From Zygnema circumcarinatum SAG 698-1b (lineage: Eukaryota; Plantae; Zygnematophyceae): DNA of 64,000 nucleotides. A program made the position numbers and the translations under genes. Below the pieces are notes generated by a model. The model was given only the letters and a program-made list of their open reading frames with translations, did not search any database and was not told where the DNA came from. Location: NCBI GenBank assembly GCA_037447605.1, contig CM074805.1:2451361-2515360 (forward strand), read 5' to 3'. Shown in pieces: positions 3,401 through 64,000 of this stretch; the stretch's first letter is position 1; every line of letters begins with the position of its first letter.

Positions 3401-6400
3401 TATGCTCAAGGCTGTGACGTCTGATTCTGTACTCTATGAATGTCGCTTTAGTAATTACCATGGATCTCATGTTTCTTTGGCTCTTCATGTTCTTGAAATG
3501 AAATGAAATGATGAAGAAGAAATGTTTCAGAAATGTTCTTTTCCTGCTGTAATGTTTGTTTTTCCCTTTTTCCCTCGTTATGGCAGGCTACTTGCAATGG
3601 GAGTAGAACTTTTCAACAACAATTGGGAGGCAATTCACCAGCGTTTTCTTCCTGCGAAGACACCCCATCAGGTAAAGTTGGTCGTTTGTACGTTCTCTGA
3701 GGGCGTACCACAGGTTCATTGCATGACACTTAACCTGAGCCAAAGGATTGTCATCATTCAGCTCACTCAGTAGGCAGAGCAGTTTGGGAGCCCCGATGGA
3801 CAGTGGGATGCTGGCAGAAACTATCTGTCCCTGTCCACCTTTTAGACTGTTTTTTGTCGTTCTCTCTTCTGGCGATGGTCGTGGATTTGATAGATGTTAA
3901 GGCATGCACTAGATCATTTCTTTAAGTTGTCGAACACCAGTCATCTTTTTATATTTGTTCACCTTTAGTGGTTTTTGTTCACTATACCACCCTTTTCCCC
4001 CGAAAGCCTTGTTCAATGCCGTACTCTTGTGTGGAATGGTTGTAGTTTGTGATTGAGGGTCTTTCGATTATTTTTCGTCAGTGTAGCCTCAAAATTGCGG
4101 TGGTGGTGAGCGCAGATCTCAATCCGGTACAAGAACTGTGTCTCAGGACGGCAACCATTCAATCCGATCAAGGTTTGCTCAGAAACTACACTCTTCCTTG
4201 GAGGACGAACAGACCTTGCTTGTACCTTTTCTGCGAAAGATAGTGGAAATGGAGCACATAGGCTTTCTTATGTCAAGTTTATTGCTGGTTTATGTTTTCC
4301 GCATCACATCAGAGCACAGTAATTGTGCAGTGAGTACTCACCCGAGGCGGAAATGTAACTTGAACTTGGATTACTGAGGGGGTGGGCTTTTCTTCCTTGG
4401 TTTTGATCGCTACCTTCCATCTCAACTTTCGGTTGCGTGCAGGCAGTACGAGAGCGCAAACTGTCCCCTTTGACGGTTCAGGAGAAGCTGAGCATCAATG
4501 AGGTGAGAGTTGGAGCAGGGCTGAGCTCCACTTGAAACGGCGACGAAACATTGAACTTACAAGGAACTGATTCTGAAGGCCGATCTTGAAGCGATTCCAC
4601 ACCTGAGGAGAACAAAGTCAAAAAGTAACGCTTCTGCGAGGAAATATCTAATATCTAACTTTCGCTCCTCTTGTTATTTTGGTGGTGCTGCAGGCCCTCA
4701 AGGTTCAGCGGATGGACTGGAATCAGGTGTGGCAGTGTTGTGTCCCTTACAGGGACCCTGCACAACTGCCTCGACTCTGGCGAGCAGCTTGTGGCTTGCC
4801 ATTGCAATCTCGGACTGCTGCAAATGCGCAAAAACATCGTCTGGCAAAGCGGAGGCGGGCTGCACAACAGCTCGAACTATCGAAGTTGTTAGGTTTGGGA
4901 GGCGAGAAAACGACCAGCAGCTTCCAAAATGGAATGGGTGTGGTAAGTTGTAACGAAGACGAGATAACTTTCAGCATATAGTTTGAGCCCACTGAGTCTT
5001 TCGCGTAGATCCTTACCCAGTAAGCAGTTCACCCCTCCATTTTGATGGCCTTTTTGTTGATTGGACAGGCCATTGTGGAGTCGTCAGAAGAAAGGACAGA
5101 GTCTGACGACGATACGGACGATGATACGAACTCTTTTGAAAATGAATTTATTCGAGAAGCATTTCTGCTGAAAGACGCTTCCCAGCCTAAAAATCCCCTC
5201 TTACAGAATGTGGCCGCGTCTAGTGAGGTTTCTTCGCACCCATCCGGAACCGCTACTAAACCCAGACATGAGAACGCACAGAAATCGCTTGCAGAGCAAA
5301 CCTCACCAGCAGTTCTGCAAGAAGATGTGGGCACTTGCACCTTGGCAGGTAGGCATGCAACGTCAGTGAGCTCATCCAGTGGCGTCCAAGCGGTTGCGTC
5401 TGTGCTGATGCAAGACATTAATGCCGTGCAAGGGGAGAGTGTCGGCACCCATATCTCAAGGATCAACGAATGCCAGCAATTTACTGAAAACGTACCGCCA
5501 AGGTCGGCCCATCAAGGTGGTTCTGGATGGAAAAGGCGAACTAGGACATCAAAAGTGGCTGTACGGAATCTACCTCCAATTGTTTTGCCAAATGGAAAGA
5601 TAATATGTCTAGGTAACCAAGGGACTTCTTCAACAATGCCTCAAGGTGCAGCGATAACATTAAAGGGACAGGCACCGTGCAACCAAGTGAGTCGCTCGAG
5701 GCATGACATCGTAGCTGGTGTCACATCTGGCAGTATGGAGGGTGTGCGGAATGGGCCACGAAAGAACTCTCGTGAACTAGATCGTTCACAGCGGCCTCGT
5801 CGTGGAGAAAATGGACGTTATAACAATAATGCGAGTCAGCGAAACGCGGTAGAAACTATGGGTAGTGGCATCCTTGCAGGAACTCCAAACCGGGCAATGC
5901 AGCAAACTGCAGTTGTCTCTGCGGGGTACGTCAGAAACGGCGGTCCAGCACAGCACGAGATTAATGCAGAGAGAGAAGCTGACAGATTAACATCACATGC
6001 GCATATAGAAACTGTTGTTGAAGGCGGTAGTGTTGTTGAAGGGCGAGGAAGGTTGTCTGGGGCGGAATTAGAAGGTATGGCCTCCGATCATCCACATCCT
6101 CTCTTGTTTGGCGGCGAGAAAAGAGCATCTCGCAAGAAGAAGAATGCAGTCCAAGCGAGGCATCAGGATGCAGAAAAAATTACTGTCCACTCAGACATTG
6201 AGAGAAATGTAGTCGGCAATTCAGAATTCGGGAACATCGCTTCTGGTTCTATATTGCAAGAAAGGAGAGGCGCAACGTCCAGATTGATTGCAATTAGTGA
6301 GGCTACAGCTCTTGACAGTTGGCTTCCTAATAAGTCGAGGGGTACAAACAGGGCTGAGAATGATAATAATCGACGAGTTTTTGATTTTGACTTGAATGAA

Positions 6401-49141: not shown

Positions 49142-52100
49142 TTAGAAGTTCCTACTGTACTTCCTAATTTCATACATGATGGATGGGATGGAAACCACAT
49201 CCTTGACAAGAGCGGATCCTCCTCCAACTCGCTGCACCACCACAGAAATGCCCAGAAATAGATGTGAGAGCCACTTCAATGAAAAACGAAAAAATAATAA
49301 CAATTAACGAAAAGCGATGTAATAGTCAACCCGGAGGCATGGAATGCAATGTGACAACATAAACGTAACAAAGAGAGGAGCCGAGCAAAGTAGAGGCCTG
49401 TTTCAGACCTTGAGGCAGTCTGACAGGCGAGTGTAGTAAAGTAGAAGCTGCGTGAGTGCCGCCCGGAGGATGTCCATTCCACACAAAAAGTTGCTAAAGT
49501 TGGTAATCACATCTTTGTGCATCGCCTCTATGGCCATCTGCAGTGACCTCAACCCAAGTACGAAATTTAACAAAGTAACTCACATTAGATCTGAGGAGCC
49601 TTCCTCGTGGTTCTCTCAGCAAGCCAAGGCCACAAACTGATGAGGAGCAGAAGAATACCTTCCAGCGCGCCGCAAAATCCTTGAGGAGTGGCTCAACCTC
49701 CTGCACAGAAATGGGCGCTACAGGAGTGCCTGCAGCTCTACTGCCTGACTGCTCCTCCCCTGTGCCTGTGGGAAATGACAGATCACTAAATTCAGGATTT
49801 CCACCGAAACACGGTTCTCAGTCACCTTTCCTCCACTACCTTCATTGCAATTACCATATCATCTGTTTTAACCAAAGCCTCAAAACTAAATCCAGGAGGA
49901 TCCACGAGCACTTCATTCAAAAAAGGGATTCATCAAGAGGGATTGAACTAAAGTGCAGGACAGTGACAAGGAAGGAAGCATCGGCTCGCACGGCAGCACT
50001 TACCTGCCCGTGTTTTGACAAATTCGATCAGCTTCAAGAAGTGTTCTCGCAGCTCCTCCTCCTGTGACCGTAGTATAACAATCAACAGATACCGCTCATT
50101 TTGGATAGTATGACGATTGGAAGCAACAAAATAAACATAGAATCTACTCCCATGGTAAATGTCTGAATTGACTTTCTTAACTTATGTTTAACGCCCCTGA
50201 TTCAAAAATACTCCAATAGACTGAGATCATAAGCAAGTCAGGCACGGTTTCAATCCAACATAATGATGGCAAAGGCACATCCGAGATCTCTTGGTTCTAT
50301 TGTGTAACCTGCAGCCAGAACTTTTATTTTTTGAGTTTCAGCCACAAAGAAATTCTCCGGATTTTGGAGGAAAGTAGGTTTTCCGCACCACAAAGACAGT
50401 TGTGAAGCTTGAGAGCAAATCCTCGAATGCCTGTTTTGTTTTGCCTCCGCTCACACCTGCCTCCTGTGAGCGCCATAGACCCACATTGCTCCATCAGGAT
50501 GCAAACAGAAGCAAACCAGTCTAAAAAAACGACAGGCATGCCTATAGTATGGTTTGATGTGTTTCAGAACGAGAAAGCACATACTTCGCAATCACAAAAA
50601 GAGATTGATGATGATGCCCAGAGTGATTTCTGACCTTGAGCACAGCTAACACAAGGTCATAATTGTTTATAAGAAAAATCATGCGCTGTTTCGGACGTGA
50701 AAACAAGCGAGAAAGTTCGACAAGAAGGTTATCCACCGCTATTCGAAGGCGATCAAGATTTAGATCCAACTGCAGCAGAACAATAAGCAATAACAAAACA
50801 GTGAGACGAGTGGATATTAAAGGTACAATCAAACCCTAAACCTGAAACCACTACACTGCCAATCATCCTCACATAACTGCCGCAGCTCGTTCACAAACAA
50901 CAAAATGAAGGCACCGACTTCAAACTGCCTTTTTGAGCAATTTCTGTCCCTCCCGGAGATGCTGAGCAGTCCTAACATCTGACTTCAGCATTCGAGAAAA
51001 TGCACGAAGCAGCACTTAGATAACTTGGCCGAGATCAATGAGGAGACACACCTGCCCGTCTCCATAGTCAATGTTCAACAGCATCATGGAAGCTGTAAAC
51101 TCTGCATAGCGGCGAGTAACATAGTGGGGATGCACATCGTCCTCCCAAAGAGATTTTGGATTCGCATTCCGAACGCTCTGAAGATGCATATCGAAGACTA
51201 GCTTGAAGCGCGGCCAGATCATAATGTTCACCTTTAACACCCGGTACAAAGACACAATAAGTAGAATCAGTTACTTTACTTTCAACTTCCCCTCTCCAAA
51301 AATAGGAGCTATTGCACACTGCCAAGCCACTGGCGACTGGGTTTGAAGCTCACCTTGTCCAAGTAAGCATCAAGACAGGGTACTCTTCTTCGTGACATGG
51401 TGAGCTGCAACCCAAACCTTACAACATGAAAAGGTCTTCATTCTCTTCTCTGCTTTCTCTCCTTTTCCAACACAGGGGAGTCTAATCATAATGCAATCAC
51501 TTGCCATGTAAGTCCCCTACTACGTTTCACGTTACCTGATGTTGGTAAGTCATGCGAATCATCATCATGAGCCCAATGGCGTCGTAACATGTCGGAAGGA
51601 CTGCTTGCAAGTGTTCATCGATAACTGCAAAAGGTCCTGTTCGACTCACACAGCAAAACTACAAAGTAGCACGTCAGACCGATGCACCATCGAAACGGTT
51701 TGATGAAAAACAAGCATCCGAACAAATGAAGCAGCATGTATGGGCTCCTCCCCTCGCCGCACCTGTGAAAATGCTATTGAAAGTTGACTCGTCTCCAAAA
51801 AAGTCGAGGCAGAACAGATACCTGCATCAAAGCCCATCATTCCCAGTGGTTGTGACGCATACCGCCATAGAGCAGAAAATTTGAATCGAGCACGTAACAA
51901 GGTATGTCCCAAAATCATCTCTGTCATTACTTCTTCTCTCATCTCAGTATAGAAACATCTATTGTTACTGATGCCTGTTGCAAAGGATCAAGCCACTCAC
52001 TCAGATGTGGCAGTGTCCATGAGCAGTTTATGCAAACTACGGAAGAGAACCTCGTAAGGGTACTTTGTATTGGCAGATTCAGCTATGTGTGGGATGATAG

Positions 52101-58630: not shown

Positions 58631-59184
58631 TGTTGCTCTGTTGGTCGATGATGCAGGTCTAGTTAAGTTCGGGGGTGTTTCGAATGCACATGTCCTATTC
58701 CGCTCAAGGAACTCGAATTTCTATATTTTTTTTCAATTTAAAAAAATTGATTCGATTACAAAGAAAATTCATTCACAATTCCTCTTTTCCTTTGGAAAAA
58801 AAAGATCTTTTCAAGAGAAATCTTCCGTCAACCCCATGTGCCTTGCAAAACCCATTTCCTTTAAAAAGATAAAAAAACAACATGATATCCCAGCTCTTCA
58901 GATCAAGCGATGAGGCCCACACATCAAAGCAAAAATGATCACAAAAGCCAAACCCGAGCAAAAGAAGAAGCACCAACGCCAAAGGAATTGATGCGGGTCT
59001 ACAAACAAGCTGCGCTCTCATTGCGCCTGCCGTCCCCCTAAAGCTGCTTCACCCACCCTCGAGCCACACCCTCCGAAGATATTGTCGATTGAGGACACTC
59101 CCAACAAGGCCTATTTTTTACAAGAAGCACTCTCAAAAATTTTAACTGCTGCTCAAACTTATCAGCAACAGCCTCTCTGCTTGC

Positions 59185-60137
59185 TCAGACCACTTCCTTG
59201 AGTGCAGGCATCATGCCATCGCCGCAGCCAGCCTTGATCGTTTGCACGGCCTCCTTGCACCGCTTTGCAAAGTCATGGCACCAGTCGCTTCGTTCTAAGG
59301 CCCTGGCCGCCTCCTTCCAGTTGTGCGTGCTCGTCTTTTCCAGAAAATCGGTGAGGTCAGTCCACGCCTTGGAGGAGTCCCACGTCGTCAGCGCCACATC
59401 CGCATACACTTTCTGGACATCGCAGCACCACTCGTCAAGGGCGCTTGCTCTCTCCGCAGCGCGATCGAGGGCCCTTTTGGAGGTCAAGAGAAGGAGAGTG
59501 TTGATTTGAAGCTGGTTCAAACACTGACTTCCCTCATACACCTGCGCCGCCACTCTCATCATGCAAAATAATATTCAGCAACGACAACGACTAGCCAGCA
59601 ACGAACAAACACGGTTATACACCGGGGCAGAAGCGGAGTTTATCGGTAAGCAGCGAGATGGGTGTCCGACCCCCCCTTTAATTTAACACTTTAATACACC
59701 GTCAATATAAAGAGTATCTTGGTACTCCAGCGTAAAATTTCCAAACTCCAAGGTTACAAAAAAGATGCAATTAAAATACTCATAACTTGCTTGCTTACCT
59801 TCGTATAGTCGAGCCCTAAAGTTCCTAGCTCCAGCTTTGCCTGCTCCTTATCATCATCCAGGTTGTAGCCTACACCGACTGCTCGAAACCCTCCGGAGCT
59901 GTTGTACACACAACTATGAGCACCCTCTTGCTTATGCAGATATTGAGAAGTTCGCGGAATGCAAAAGCTGCGGACAGTGCTCACCCCAATTTCTTTTTCC
60001 AGCTCTGTCAAAATCCCACCCACCCTATTCCAAGGCTTCTCTTCCCAAATCTTGCGCCCTTCAAGCCCTGCAAGAGAACTCAGCAGCACGGCAGCGACGA
60101 GCAACATGAGATGCAGAGTGACCCCACTCGAAGCCAT
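59185..60137 (-). CDS. Secreted T4-type (GH24-like) lysozyme homologue, 231 aa, 2 exons
   Basis: Exon 1 60137-59799 (gccATGg context, hydrophobic signal peptide, KQEGAHSCVYNSSGGFRAVGVGYNL) ends AAG|GTAAGC. Exon 2 59541-59185 follows CGCAG| in phase 0 and carries QKVYADVAL..FLEKTSTHNWKEAARALERSDWCHDFAKRCKEAVQTIKAG, matching the recalled T4-like C-terminal pattern (VLVDMAFNMG..AL...DW.EAA.EM..S.WA.QV..RA.RL...M..G). Confidence 0.8.
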
Positions 60138-60559
60138 GGCTGCCCCAGACCCCTCCTACCTGCTCGCTCGAAACAAGAAGGCACTCCACAACTATCGGCC
60201 TTCTTGCACAAGAGATTAAAAACGAGCGAGCAACAGGAAGAACGAGAGGGCGTGACTTCTCAAACGGAGATCCCAAGTGTGATTCCATGCAAGGCCCGTG
60301 TGCACAATCACGTGGCGGACAGGCAGAGAGCGACGTGTTTCTGCGCTGCTGCAGATCGGCGAGGCGAGGCGAGCATGCGCGTCCTCCAGTCCTCCTCGGG
60401 CCGCCGCCGCTCGGAAGCTCCGCCGCAAAGCCGCCGGCCCGCCGGCGCGGCCTCCCTCTTTCTTTTCTCGGAGCGGCCGTCGCCCTTTTGTGTCCCACAC
60501 CATGTCATGTGTGGCATCGAGGGTGTGGGCCACACTAGCTGCACCAATCCTTAATACTA

Positions 60560-60601
60560 GGGGGGGGGGGGGGGGGGNNNNNNNNNNGGGGGGGGGGGGG
60601 G
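60560..60601. other. Assembly gap (10 N) flanked by poly-G
   Basis: N at 60578-60587 between G runs of 18 and 14. Confidence 0.95.
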
Positions 60602-61653: not shown

Positions 61654-63347
61654 TCAGGTCAGTTCGAGGAAGGTTGCGAGCACAAAATCCTGAAACCTCT
61701 TGGCATAGAGTTTGGGTGCAACTGCTGAAATCGACTTGCCATCATATTGCAATTTCTTTACATAATGCTCCATCCTTTTCCACTTGTCATATTCCTGAAG
61801 CGCAATACCGAGTGAAACACGGGGCGATCAGTGGGTCATAGCAGGCCTTCACAGTTCAGCAACAAAATGAGAACATTCACATACGTAACAATGACTAGGA
61901 ACATTTGCATATGCGAAATCCAAAATAGAAAAAAATTTATCACATCGCAATCAGTTCCCTGGAGAATGTCCAGAATTTTCTTTCTGTTATTTTGTTCTCC
62001 AGATCAAGATAAATCCCGACTGTGGAAATGCAACTCACCTGAAGGATATCAATAATCCCAAAGTACAGTACCACCTGATAAGCCTCCGCCAGTTCTGGAT
62101 CAGTTATGGGCTTTCGGTCCCTCCTGTCCAAACGAACAGCTGTTGCCTCCATCCCCTGCCCTAAAGTCCCTCTTGGTCTCTGAGACAATGGGTTGAATGT
62201 TTCTTCTTTACTCCTTTCAGAAGAAACCTGCCGTCAAACTCCAACAAGATAACTCAGTCCAGAGTAGACCTGATCAGCACAACAAAAAGCAGCAAATGAC
62301 ATACACGTGCTACGGTTTCATTTACTTTCGGCTCGTCCCGCATTCCTCATCCGGTATCCTAAGATGATTCCTGTTCTATTCTTATCTTACCAGCCCCTAC
62401 TAAATATATCGTACAGCAGAATCAACAGCCATCTACTCTATCACATATTCCAACAGAGTACCCGACCTTCCGATGCTGGACCTTGCGCCTACACACACAG
62501 CAAAGAAAGCTCACTTTTCCACCATTACACGTTGCAATGCAAGGACGAATCCATTTTCTCAGGGTTGACCATCCACTCTCACCATTTCTTCTCAAAACGA
62601 AATCATCACTATTCTTTAGTCAGCCAACTTTAGCGCAACCTAATGAACTCCGGGGGCAGCTCCGGGAAAAACCAAACATGAGAAGGAACACGAAACGTAC
62701 TGCTGCATCCCTCGCAACTTGTGTACTTGTCGGCCCATTTGAACTTTCGTCCACAGACGATCCAGCTTTGAGAATGCCTGAAAAAAAGAGCATTAAAAGA
62801 GTACAAATATAAACCGGCTGACCAGCAACCCAGAGGAGCTTGTCCTGTGCGGTTCGAAGTTCATTTGCATGGCCAGATTCCTAAGTTCGATAGAAAAAGT
62901 GAATGCAAACCGGCAGGCTCTCTCGTGCATCAAATGCGAATCAGATAGTGGGAGGCGGAATGGAACTGAGATAGGAGGAAGAGAGAAAAAGACGGATGAA
63001 GGAGAAGGAAAGCATTGAAGAGTGAAACCTGTTTGGTACTTTCTCCTTTCCCAAGTTAGACATCAAGAGTCCTTTGCAAACAAAGTAGAGAAAGTTCTTC
63101 CTCTTGATCTTCCTCAGCACCTCCATTTCACCATGTTTTATGCATAGCTCACTCCGAAAAACTTCTCTACTTACCGTCCTCTGTCACAGCAGGATTTAAC
63201 AAGCCCTTTTCCACCGACCCCGTTGGCCCATCCGAAATGAGGACCACAGGCGGCGGAGGTGGTTTGGCCTTGAAATGGAGCCCGAGCAGCAGGCTGTAGT
63301 CCATAATGCGCTGCTCCTCTAGGAATCGGCAATCCGCTACGATTTGG
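61654..63347 (-). CDS. Phosphatidylinositol-4-phosphate 5-kinase, 3' exons only (5' part outside the window or unrecognised)
   Basis: QIVADCRFLEEQRIMDYSLLLGLHF (exon from 63347), AYQVVLYFGIIDILQ, and final exon EYDKWKRMEHYVKKLQYDGKSISAVAPKLYAKRFQDFVLATFLELT* (stop 61654-61656): the PIPK MDYSL and DILQxY motifs plus the activation loop. Confidence 0.9.
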
Positions 63348-64000
63348 CTGCAGATAAACATGTCGTCAAGTTGTTGATTTAGTGTAAGAGTAGCTTGTCC
63401 AGAGAATGAAAGAATTACAACTCTATGTTCGAAACAAAGCGACGTCCTTCACCTAAATTTTGGACCAAGCAAATGCTGCTCTTTCATTTCAAGAAAAGAA
63501 AAAAAGAAAACTTTATCACGGTTCCCTAAATCACGGAGCACCGACAATGTCTTCAGCACAAAAGCAGTGTTGTTCAACTGAGGCTCACTCATTATGATTT
63601 TGACACCAATTGGTACTCCTTTTCTATTTCAAACCCTAACCCTGCTACGCCATACCAGGGAATGTGCGCCTGCCTGGGCATAGATCCCTATCCCCTTTTG
63701 TCGCTACAAATTTTTCAAAAAAGACAACCCTACAGTACAGCACTGGCCTTAACCATAACCAGTTTGTAAGGCTTAGGATTTCCGATGCAATCGGTTCGCG
63801 TCCCATGCAAAGCGTCACGTGCCGAAGTCCTCTGACAAATCAGAGGCATGTCCATCGTACACTAGGGAATTGCACAACGGGGCGCAATCTGGCTACTATA
63901 TAATCCCATGTCCAATTGGCAGAAATAGATCTAAGGACTGATTTCTGGGCTCTTGAAAGTAGAAAACACAGAAAGGAATGATGCGGCTATCAGTTAAAAT

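Follow-up and report, generated by a model that had tools for sequence, protein, structure and literature searches.

The closest described counterparts of the protein reported here are the T4-type lysozymes, above all T4 lysozyme itself (gene e; GH24; PF00959), in which Asp20 is regarded as essential on the basis of mutagenesis. Lytic transglycosylases and goose-type lysozyme have one conserved acid Glu, located where the first helix ends, and lack an equivalent of Asp20. The 'lysozyme' activity of plants is classically ascribed to chitinases, and a plastid peptidoglycan layer is considered to persist in streptophyte algae, bryophytes and ferns. Eukaryotic genomes that harbor phage-type or bacterial-type lysozyme genes are known: bivalves have co-opted phage-type lysozymes (PMC5303276), and transfers of GH25 lysozymes to plants, fungi and insects are cited in the same paper, the enzymes being described in both cases as functional antibacterials. 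GH24 is treated there with no mention of plants or algae (PMC5303276). The streptophyte family presented in this work differs from these functional antibacterials by its changed catalytic centre. The GH24 family is known; the lineage studied here is a variant of it whose catalytic centre is altered and which has been conserved between Klebsormidium and a liverwort.

The window, that is, the whole stretch of 64,000 nucleotides of Zygnema circumcarinatum SAG 698-1b that was analyzed, contains on its minus strand a two-exon gene with a start ATG at 60137 and a product of 231 amino acids. Coding exon 1 (60137–59799; codons 1–113) specifies the predicted signal peptide, a variable linker, the first Cys and the N-lobe with Glu71, and coding exon 2 (59541–59185; codons 114–231 and the stop) specifies the long helix and the C-lobe. 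The two are separated by a phase 0 intron of 257 nt (59798–59542) with GT..AG borders (GTAAGC...GCGCAG). The GC content is 54% in the coding sequence (63% at third positions) versus 43% in the intron, and the reading frame of exon 1 agrees with that of the relatives. Removal of the intron was observed in contigs from three public runs (X1, X2 and X6), mapped over positions 58800–60500. One contig of 1182 nt from run X6 is the complete spliced mRNA. It extends from 60475 to 59037 on the minus strand, with 60475–59797 joined to 59539–59037, and contains a 5'UTR of ~338 nt and a 3'UTR of ~148 nt. Contigs that retain the intron are present too, at lower depth, in two of the three runs. A tblastn search found no second copy of the gene within the 64-kb window.

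An upstream open reading frame of 75 codons (60061–60288, minus strand) begins in the 5'UTR, within the mRNA contig. It runs across the main ATG in a different frame and might lower the translation of the lysozyme-like product. In run X2, two more GT..AG joints (59968–60159 and 60068–60311, minus strand) were found at low depth and with short flanks of 26–29 nt. Both would delete the start codon together with the predicted signal peptide. They were considered as a source of an alternative N-terminus, such as a transit peptide, and rejected, as neither connects the lysozyme domain to an in-frame ATG farther upstream. Because neither yields an in-frame lysozyme reading frame, the two joints represent, if real, non-productive isoforms.

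The earlier note had placed a two-exon gene between VPS52 and PIP5K, an arrangement that was confirmed for the exons, for the junction (by the transcripts) and for both flanking domains. A Pfam scan of the ATG-started open reading frames in the flanks gave no match, and the two neighbors were identified via stop-to-stop frames picked by third-position GC. In such frames Pfam detects Vps52_C at 51019–51270 (minus strand; E 2.7e-25) and PIP5K at 61943–63448 (minus strand), the latter as two segments, 63170–63448 (E 3.4e-10) and 61943–62233. The sequence from VPS52 to the gene is free of any N run. The sole N run of the window (60578–60587; 10 N) interrupts a poly-G tract (60560–60601) on the PIP5K side of the gene and lies ~85 nt upstream from the 5' end of the mRNA contig. 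Continuity across 58–62 kb, as checked on the assembly sequence, is thus unbroken toward VPS52, but is interrupted by the 10-N run toward PIP5K. The proximity of this run to the transcript start would be compatible with an assembly error that put a phage or bacterial gene at this locus. Such a contaminant or artefact is contradicted by the spliced transcripts in three runs, by the lack of N runs on the VPS52 side, and by a clade restricted to streptophytes with an intron position common to at least two other lineages (see below). Its probability is vanishingly small, and we consider it already refuted for practical purposes. The spliced transcripts and the gap-free sequence toward VPS52 bear out a native gene, as had been claimed.

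The N-terminus has the character of a signal peptide, which is predicted to comprise residues 1–23 (60069–60137, minus strand), with the small residues S21 and A23 before the putative cut. Its hydrophobic core, at residues ~7–22, attains a mean hydropathy of up to 2.9, a value from a hydropathy heuristic only. The relatives have similar N-termini, and one of them is named 'Secreted protein' by UniRef. Residues ~24–58, a candidate for the pro-region suggested earlier, are variable across the family, and the equivalent stretch is of low confidence in the structural model of a relative, P0002. Eight cysteines are found in the window protein (residues 59, 76, 120, 152, 153, 201, 208 and 219), each of which is kept in 12–14 of the 14 streptophyte relatives and in 16 of 16 wider relatives. 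A signal-peptide-like start and eight cysteines had both been pointed out before; the former is recovered at a predicted length of ~23 residues, and the latter proved to be conserved in the streptophyte clade and beyond it. As judged from these sequence features, the protein is quite probably secreted or extracytoplasmic.

Membership of the family rests on an exhaustive HMMER search of representative proteins. A word-indexed homologue search added no relatives: exon 1 in an extended reading frame gave no match, P0002 matched itself only, and the streptophyte alignment matched three of its own rows. With exon 2 as the query, the search gave 51 representative proteins (E up to 0.001), and 14 full-length or near-full-length relatives can be aligned across the whole mature protein. 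The relationship to T4 lysozyme had been expected to emerge from a Pfam/HHpred-type check, and the outcome was divided: the exons, when scanned separately, had no Pfam match and hence none to PF00959, whereas the family profile and hhalign both match T4 lysozyme. The profile of the streptophyte alignment aligns in the PDB with T4 lysozyme residues 5–157 (E 2.5e-6), and all PDB matches listed for it are T4 lysozyme or T4-lysozyme fusions. In hhalign, the same alignment matches that of the canonical relatives (the wider group described below) plus T4 lysozyme with a probability of 100 and E 1.7e-40. Against a hidden Markov model made of the canonical relatives only, the full spliced product of the window gene reaches 143.9 bits and T4 lysozyme 50.7 bits, whereas none of 500 shuffled versions of that product exceeds 6.1 bits. 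No streptophyte relative reaches the Pfam gathering cut-off of PF00959 (22.3 bits), the best scores being 19.2 and 17.1 bits. Exon 2 alone has a weak PDB match to T4 lysozyme residues 114–160 (E 0.02); a phmmer search of the PDB with exon 1 gave chance matches only, e.g., Csm3 and uL3, which were discarded. By language-model features, PF00959 accounts for 93 of the 100 clusters nearest to exon 2 and for 70 of the 100 nearest to the mature part of exon 1.

The gapless register with the N-lobe of T4 lysozyme given in the earlier note was reproduced by HMMER and hhalign, with E71 corresponding to E11, Y78 to Y18, G83 to G23, and G88/G90 to G28/G30. The homology to T4 lysozyme spans both lobes, and we regard the assignment of the window protein to the GH24 (T4-type lysozyme) fold and family as nearly certain. 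The two proteins share the two-lobe fold over residues 5–157 and, in the same register, Glu11, Tyr18, Gly23, Gly28, Gly30, Trp138 and Arg145. They differ in that identity is ~21%, Asp20 is replaced by Ser and Thr26 by Ala, and Gln105 and Gln141 are changed as well. Beyond what the T4 enzyme has, the window protein possesses a predicted signal peptide, eight cysteines and a linker of ~35 residues, and its gene contains an intron. In the T4 genome entry AF158101, the translation of gene e (stretch L001, 2507–2998, minus strand) has Arg12 and Ile137, where the PDB sequence has Gly and Arg, respectively.

The evidence on the fold consists of a model of a relative with ~50% identity and a model of window exon 2. 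The AlphaFold model of the relative, P0002 (identity to the window protein ~50% in total, with 46% and 56% for the two exons taken separately), has pLDDT values >90 across the domain, and Foldseek superimposes it to T4 lysozyme with TM values of 0.70–0.74 and a probability of 1.00. Its named matches among AlphaFold clusters are lysozyme, GH24 or pesticin, and several others are without a name. The model of exon 2 has a mean pLDDT of 88.6, and the 50 PDB matches listed for it are all T4 lysozyme, in the C-lobe, with TM values by query of 0.61–0.67. T4 lysozyme is the top match of both models, as would be anticipated from the similarity first proposed. Among reviewed proteins, the best fold matches are the probable T4-type lysozymes 1 and 2 of Dictyostelium discoideum (Q556F2 and Q86AA1), which are likewise eukaryotic and T4-type, but only 15–16% identical.

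The canonical relatives include proteins of the brachiopod Lingula anatina (XP_013381080.1) and the dinoflagellate Gymnodinium smaydae, along with many metagenome proteins that bear the IMG name 'GH24 family phage-related lysozyme'. Three of the five that were scanned (P0019, P0022 and P0025) pass the PF00959 cut-off, and one protein of the group matches lysozyme genes of T4-like phages at ~31% identity. These cysteine-framed eukaryotic proteins resemble the window protein in having eight cysteines in the same columns and a signal-peptide-like start, at 27–31% identity. They differ from it in keeping the Glu-x8-Asp-x5-Thr signature, Asn105 and Gln141, and many of them carry Cys-rich C-terminal tails that are absent from the window protein. 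Because the eight-cysteine framework is common to both, the streptophyte clade can be described as a branch of a eukaryotic GH24 group with a disulfide framework. One canonical protein, P0031, is encoded at positions 5680–6387 of an ENA contig (L005) of 68% GC, between intron-poor genes, the products of which are an EF-hand ion channel, a dual-specificity phosphatase and an ankyrin-repeat protein. From its sequence this contig looks eukaryotic, and its source may be a high-GC picoeukaryote.

A comparison of the catalytic cleft was made by counting residues at T4 lysozyme positions in the 14 rows of the streptophyte clade and in 16 canonical relatives. The general acid Glu11 corresponds to Glu71 of the window protein (59925–59927, minus strand) and is Glu in 12 of 14 streptophyte rows and in 15 of 16 canonical ones. 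By contrast, Asp20 is present in all 16 canonical relatives and in none of the 14 streptophyte rows. Residues 19–21 of the T4 enzyme are represented by Asn79-Ser80-Ser81 (59895–59903, minus strand), which puts Ser80 in the place of the catalytic Asp20. Position 26, Thr in 14 of 16 canonical relatives, is occupied by Ala in 13 and by Gly in one of the streptophyte rows (Ala86 in the window protein; 59880–59882, minus strand). The Asn found at position 105 in 13 of the 16 canonical relatives gives way to Thr, Ser or Ala, here Thr165. Gln141 (13/16) is replaced in nine of 14 rows by Asp or Glu, which in the window protein is Asp203 (59272–59274, minus strand). Position 19 is non-acidic in the canonical relatives, but is Asp or Glu in 10 and Asn in three of the 14 streptophyte rows. 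Position 25 is Arg in 12 of 14, versus nine Lys, five Pro and two Arg in the canonical set (n = 16). With E71, S80 and A86, the window protein departs from the canonical Glu-x8-Asp-x5-Thr signature, as does the rest of the clade, and the peptidoglycan target proposed in the earlier note is putative. The Glu or its Gly neighbor is changed in three members of the family (P0010, P0012 and P0014). Since the replacements are nearly fixed, the cleft looks rebuilt rather than decaying, and the near-fixed Ala26 and Arg25 argue for constraint on a new cleft. Asn79-Ser80-Ser81 is also the sole N-x-S/T sequon of the window protein; the other two relatives with Asn at position 19, P0002 (N-S-T) and Spirogloea (N-S-S), both have a sequon at this site.

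A mode of action may be outlined from these residues. The protein would enter the endoplasmic reticulum via its predicted signal peptide of ~23 residues, form four disulfides and then be secreted. The cleft formed by the two lobes would accommodate a beta-1,4-linked glycan of amino sugars, for which bacterial peptidoglycan is the likeliest candidate, with Glu71 acting as the acid. The role of Asp20 would either be assumed by another carboxylate (Asp203 in this protein; Asp or Glu at position 19 in most relatives) or be dispensed with, as in Glu-only lytic enzymes. Asp203 is a candidate for the substitute base from its sequence position only. The Glu-only pattern is shared with the lytic transglycosylases and goose-type lysozyme, which provide a possible working analogy with no claim of membership, the sequence family here being GH24. 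In this species, an N-glycan on Asn79, in the catalytic loop, may restrict the cleft and could even block it. The window protein has no acidic residue at position 19, which weighs against the catalytic proposal. That these proteins are still catalytic in a non-canonical way is put forward tentatively, at slightly less than an even chance.

The loss of hydrolysis is a real possibility, given that Asp20 is regarded as essential in T4 lysozyme and that Thr26 and the amide at position 105 are changed as well. The protein would then be a non-catalytic pseudo-lysozyme in which fold and cleft have been preserved just for binding. It could act, for instance, as a sensor, as a decoy, or as a secreted lectin for peptidoglycan or chitin, and the conserved Glu would contribute to stability or to ligand binding. 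The absence of both Asp20 and Thr26 in all 14 streptophyte rows fits such a change of function, as do the replaced amide, the altered Glu or Gly neighbor in P0010, P0012 and P0014, the sequon at Asn79 on the catalytic loop of the window protein, and the long stem branch of the clade described below. On the other hand, Glu11 is kept in 12 of 14 rows across the deepest streptophyte splits, and acidic residues recur at position 19 (10/14) and position 141 (9/14), a pattern that looks like replacement and not decay. Weighing both sides, we consider a binding-only protein somewhat unlikely, and the tentative reading of a rebuilt catalytic centre is retained in what follows.

The named members of the close clade come from Klebsormidium nitens (GAQ86696.1), Chara braunii (GBG88992.1), Closterium (several entries), Spirogloea muscicola and the liverwort Riccia fluitans (two genes), and all of them are annotated as 'hypothetical' or 'uncharacterized'. 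In Closterium sp. NIES-67/68 (P0001/P0052/P0053), one protein contains two tandem remodeled GH24-like domains. The K. nitens protein (P0069) has the UniRef name 'Pectinesterase inhibitor domain-containing protein'; this assignment was set aside, because Pfam gives no such match at E up to 1 and the name looks wrong. A maximum-likelihood tree with T4 lysozyme as the root unites all 14 streptophyte rows in a single clade (support 100/99), the stem of which is long, at 1.61 changes per site. The phylogeny with relatives proposed in the earlier note thereby places the protein in a well-defined streptophyte clade beside the wider eukaryotic GH24 group. The tree places the window protein among zygnematophyte sequences; its immediate group (100/98) comprises P0002, the genomic relative L004 and a Closterium paralogue. 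The intron is at the same codon boundary in L004, and exon fragments of another lineage (P0015–P0027, from Logan and JGI; the P0010 group) begin at the same intron boundary. Many of the short open reading frames in P0015–P0027 are single exons that end after a 'GDIQHS' stretch, which suggests a second intron in that lineage.

One well-supported clade and an intron position common to at least two other lineages indicate that the gene is ancient, not a lone or recent acquisition. The horizontal acquisition inferred originally, if understood as lone or recent, does not survive this result, since the relatives in Klebsormidium, Chara, Closterium, Spirogloea and Riccia belong to one clade and the intron position is common to other lineages. 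A gene that is old and vertically inherited in streptophytes is the best reading. Any transfer from a phage or bacterium predates the streptophyte radiation, given the range of the clade and the shared intron position, and it may predate the green lineage, because the eight cysteines are common to the clade and the wider eukaryotic GH24 group. An antibacterial muramidase gained recently by horizontal transfer, with the action of T4 lysozyme, would be in line with the T4-type fold and homology, with the secretory features, and with the finding that, among phage proteins, genuine T4-type gene e lysozymes are nearest to the wider clade. It is improbable, however: the Glu-x8-Asp-x5-Thr triad is not preserved, and the clade extends over Klebsormidium, Chara, the Zygnematophyceae and a liverwort, with the same intron position in at least two other lineages. 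The proposal as a whole, an old and vertically inherited branch of secreted GH24 proteins with non-canonical catalysis included, is offered from sequence comparison as a tentative reading that falls a little short of an even probability.

The distribution of the family also bears on a possible role at the plastid, where the protein would remodel the peptidoglycan layer of the organelle itself. The named members are solely from lineages reported to keep plastid peptidoglycan (PMC9434261), and none of the 51 search hits, most of which are unnamed, has a vascular-plant name. Many ancestral genes, however, have this taxon distribution. In addition, the N-terminus is of the hydrophobic signal-peptide type and not a Ser/Thr-rich transit peptide, the eight conserved cysteines fit the secretory pathway, and the same cysteine framework is found in a brachiopod and a dinoflagellate. 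A plastid enzyme is, therefore, quite unlikely, and a secreted protein remains the preferred reading. A more specific combination, in which a T4-type lysozyme derivative has been secreted since the streptophyte ancestor and has acquired, with its rebuilt centre, a new specificity or mechanism within GH24, is speculative and rather unlikely to hold in full. On this reading, vascular plants may have lost the family, and a GH24 protein rebuilt in this manner might act on peptidoglycan while sparing, or serving, the plastid's own layer.

No paper that describes a GH24 family in streptophytes was found in the literature searched, most subscription journals being outside the search. This agrees with the view that the protein is undescribed in these organisms, and a T4-type lysozyme lineage that extends from Klebsormidium to liverworts appears to be undescribed so far. 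The possibility raised earlier that the family might prove to be widespread and already characterized in plants is correct in its first part, as it is fairly widespread in non-vascular streptophytes, but not in its second, as it is uncharacterized. Standard annotation misses the family, since all of its members are 'hypothetical' and all fall below the Pfam cut-off.

These findings correct the horizontal-transfer reading of the locus: the gene is an old resident of its lineage, not a recent capture. The streptophyte GH24 family constitutes a natural experiment in the rebuilding of one of the best-studied enzyme active sites, and it offers a specific candidate for the means by which early-diverging plants and the algae related to them handle bacteria, or wall material of bacterial type, outside the cell.
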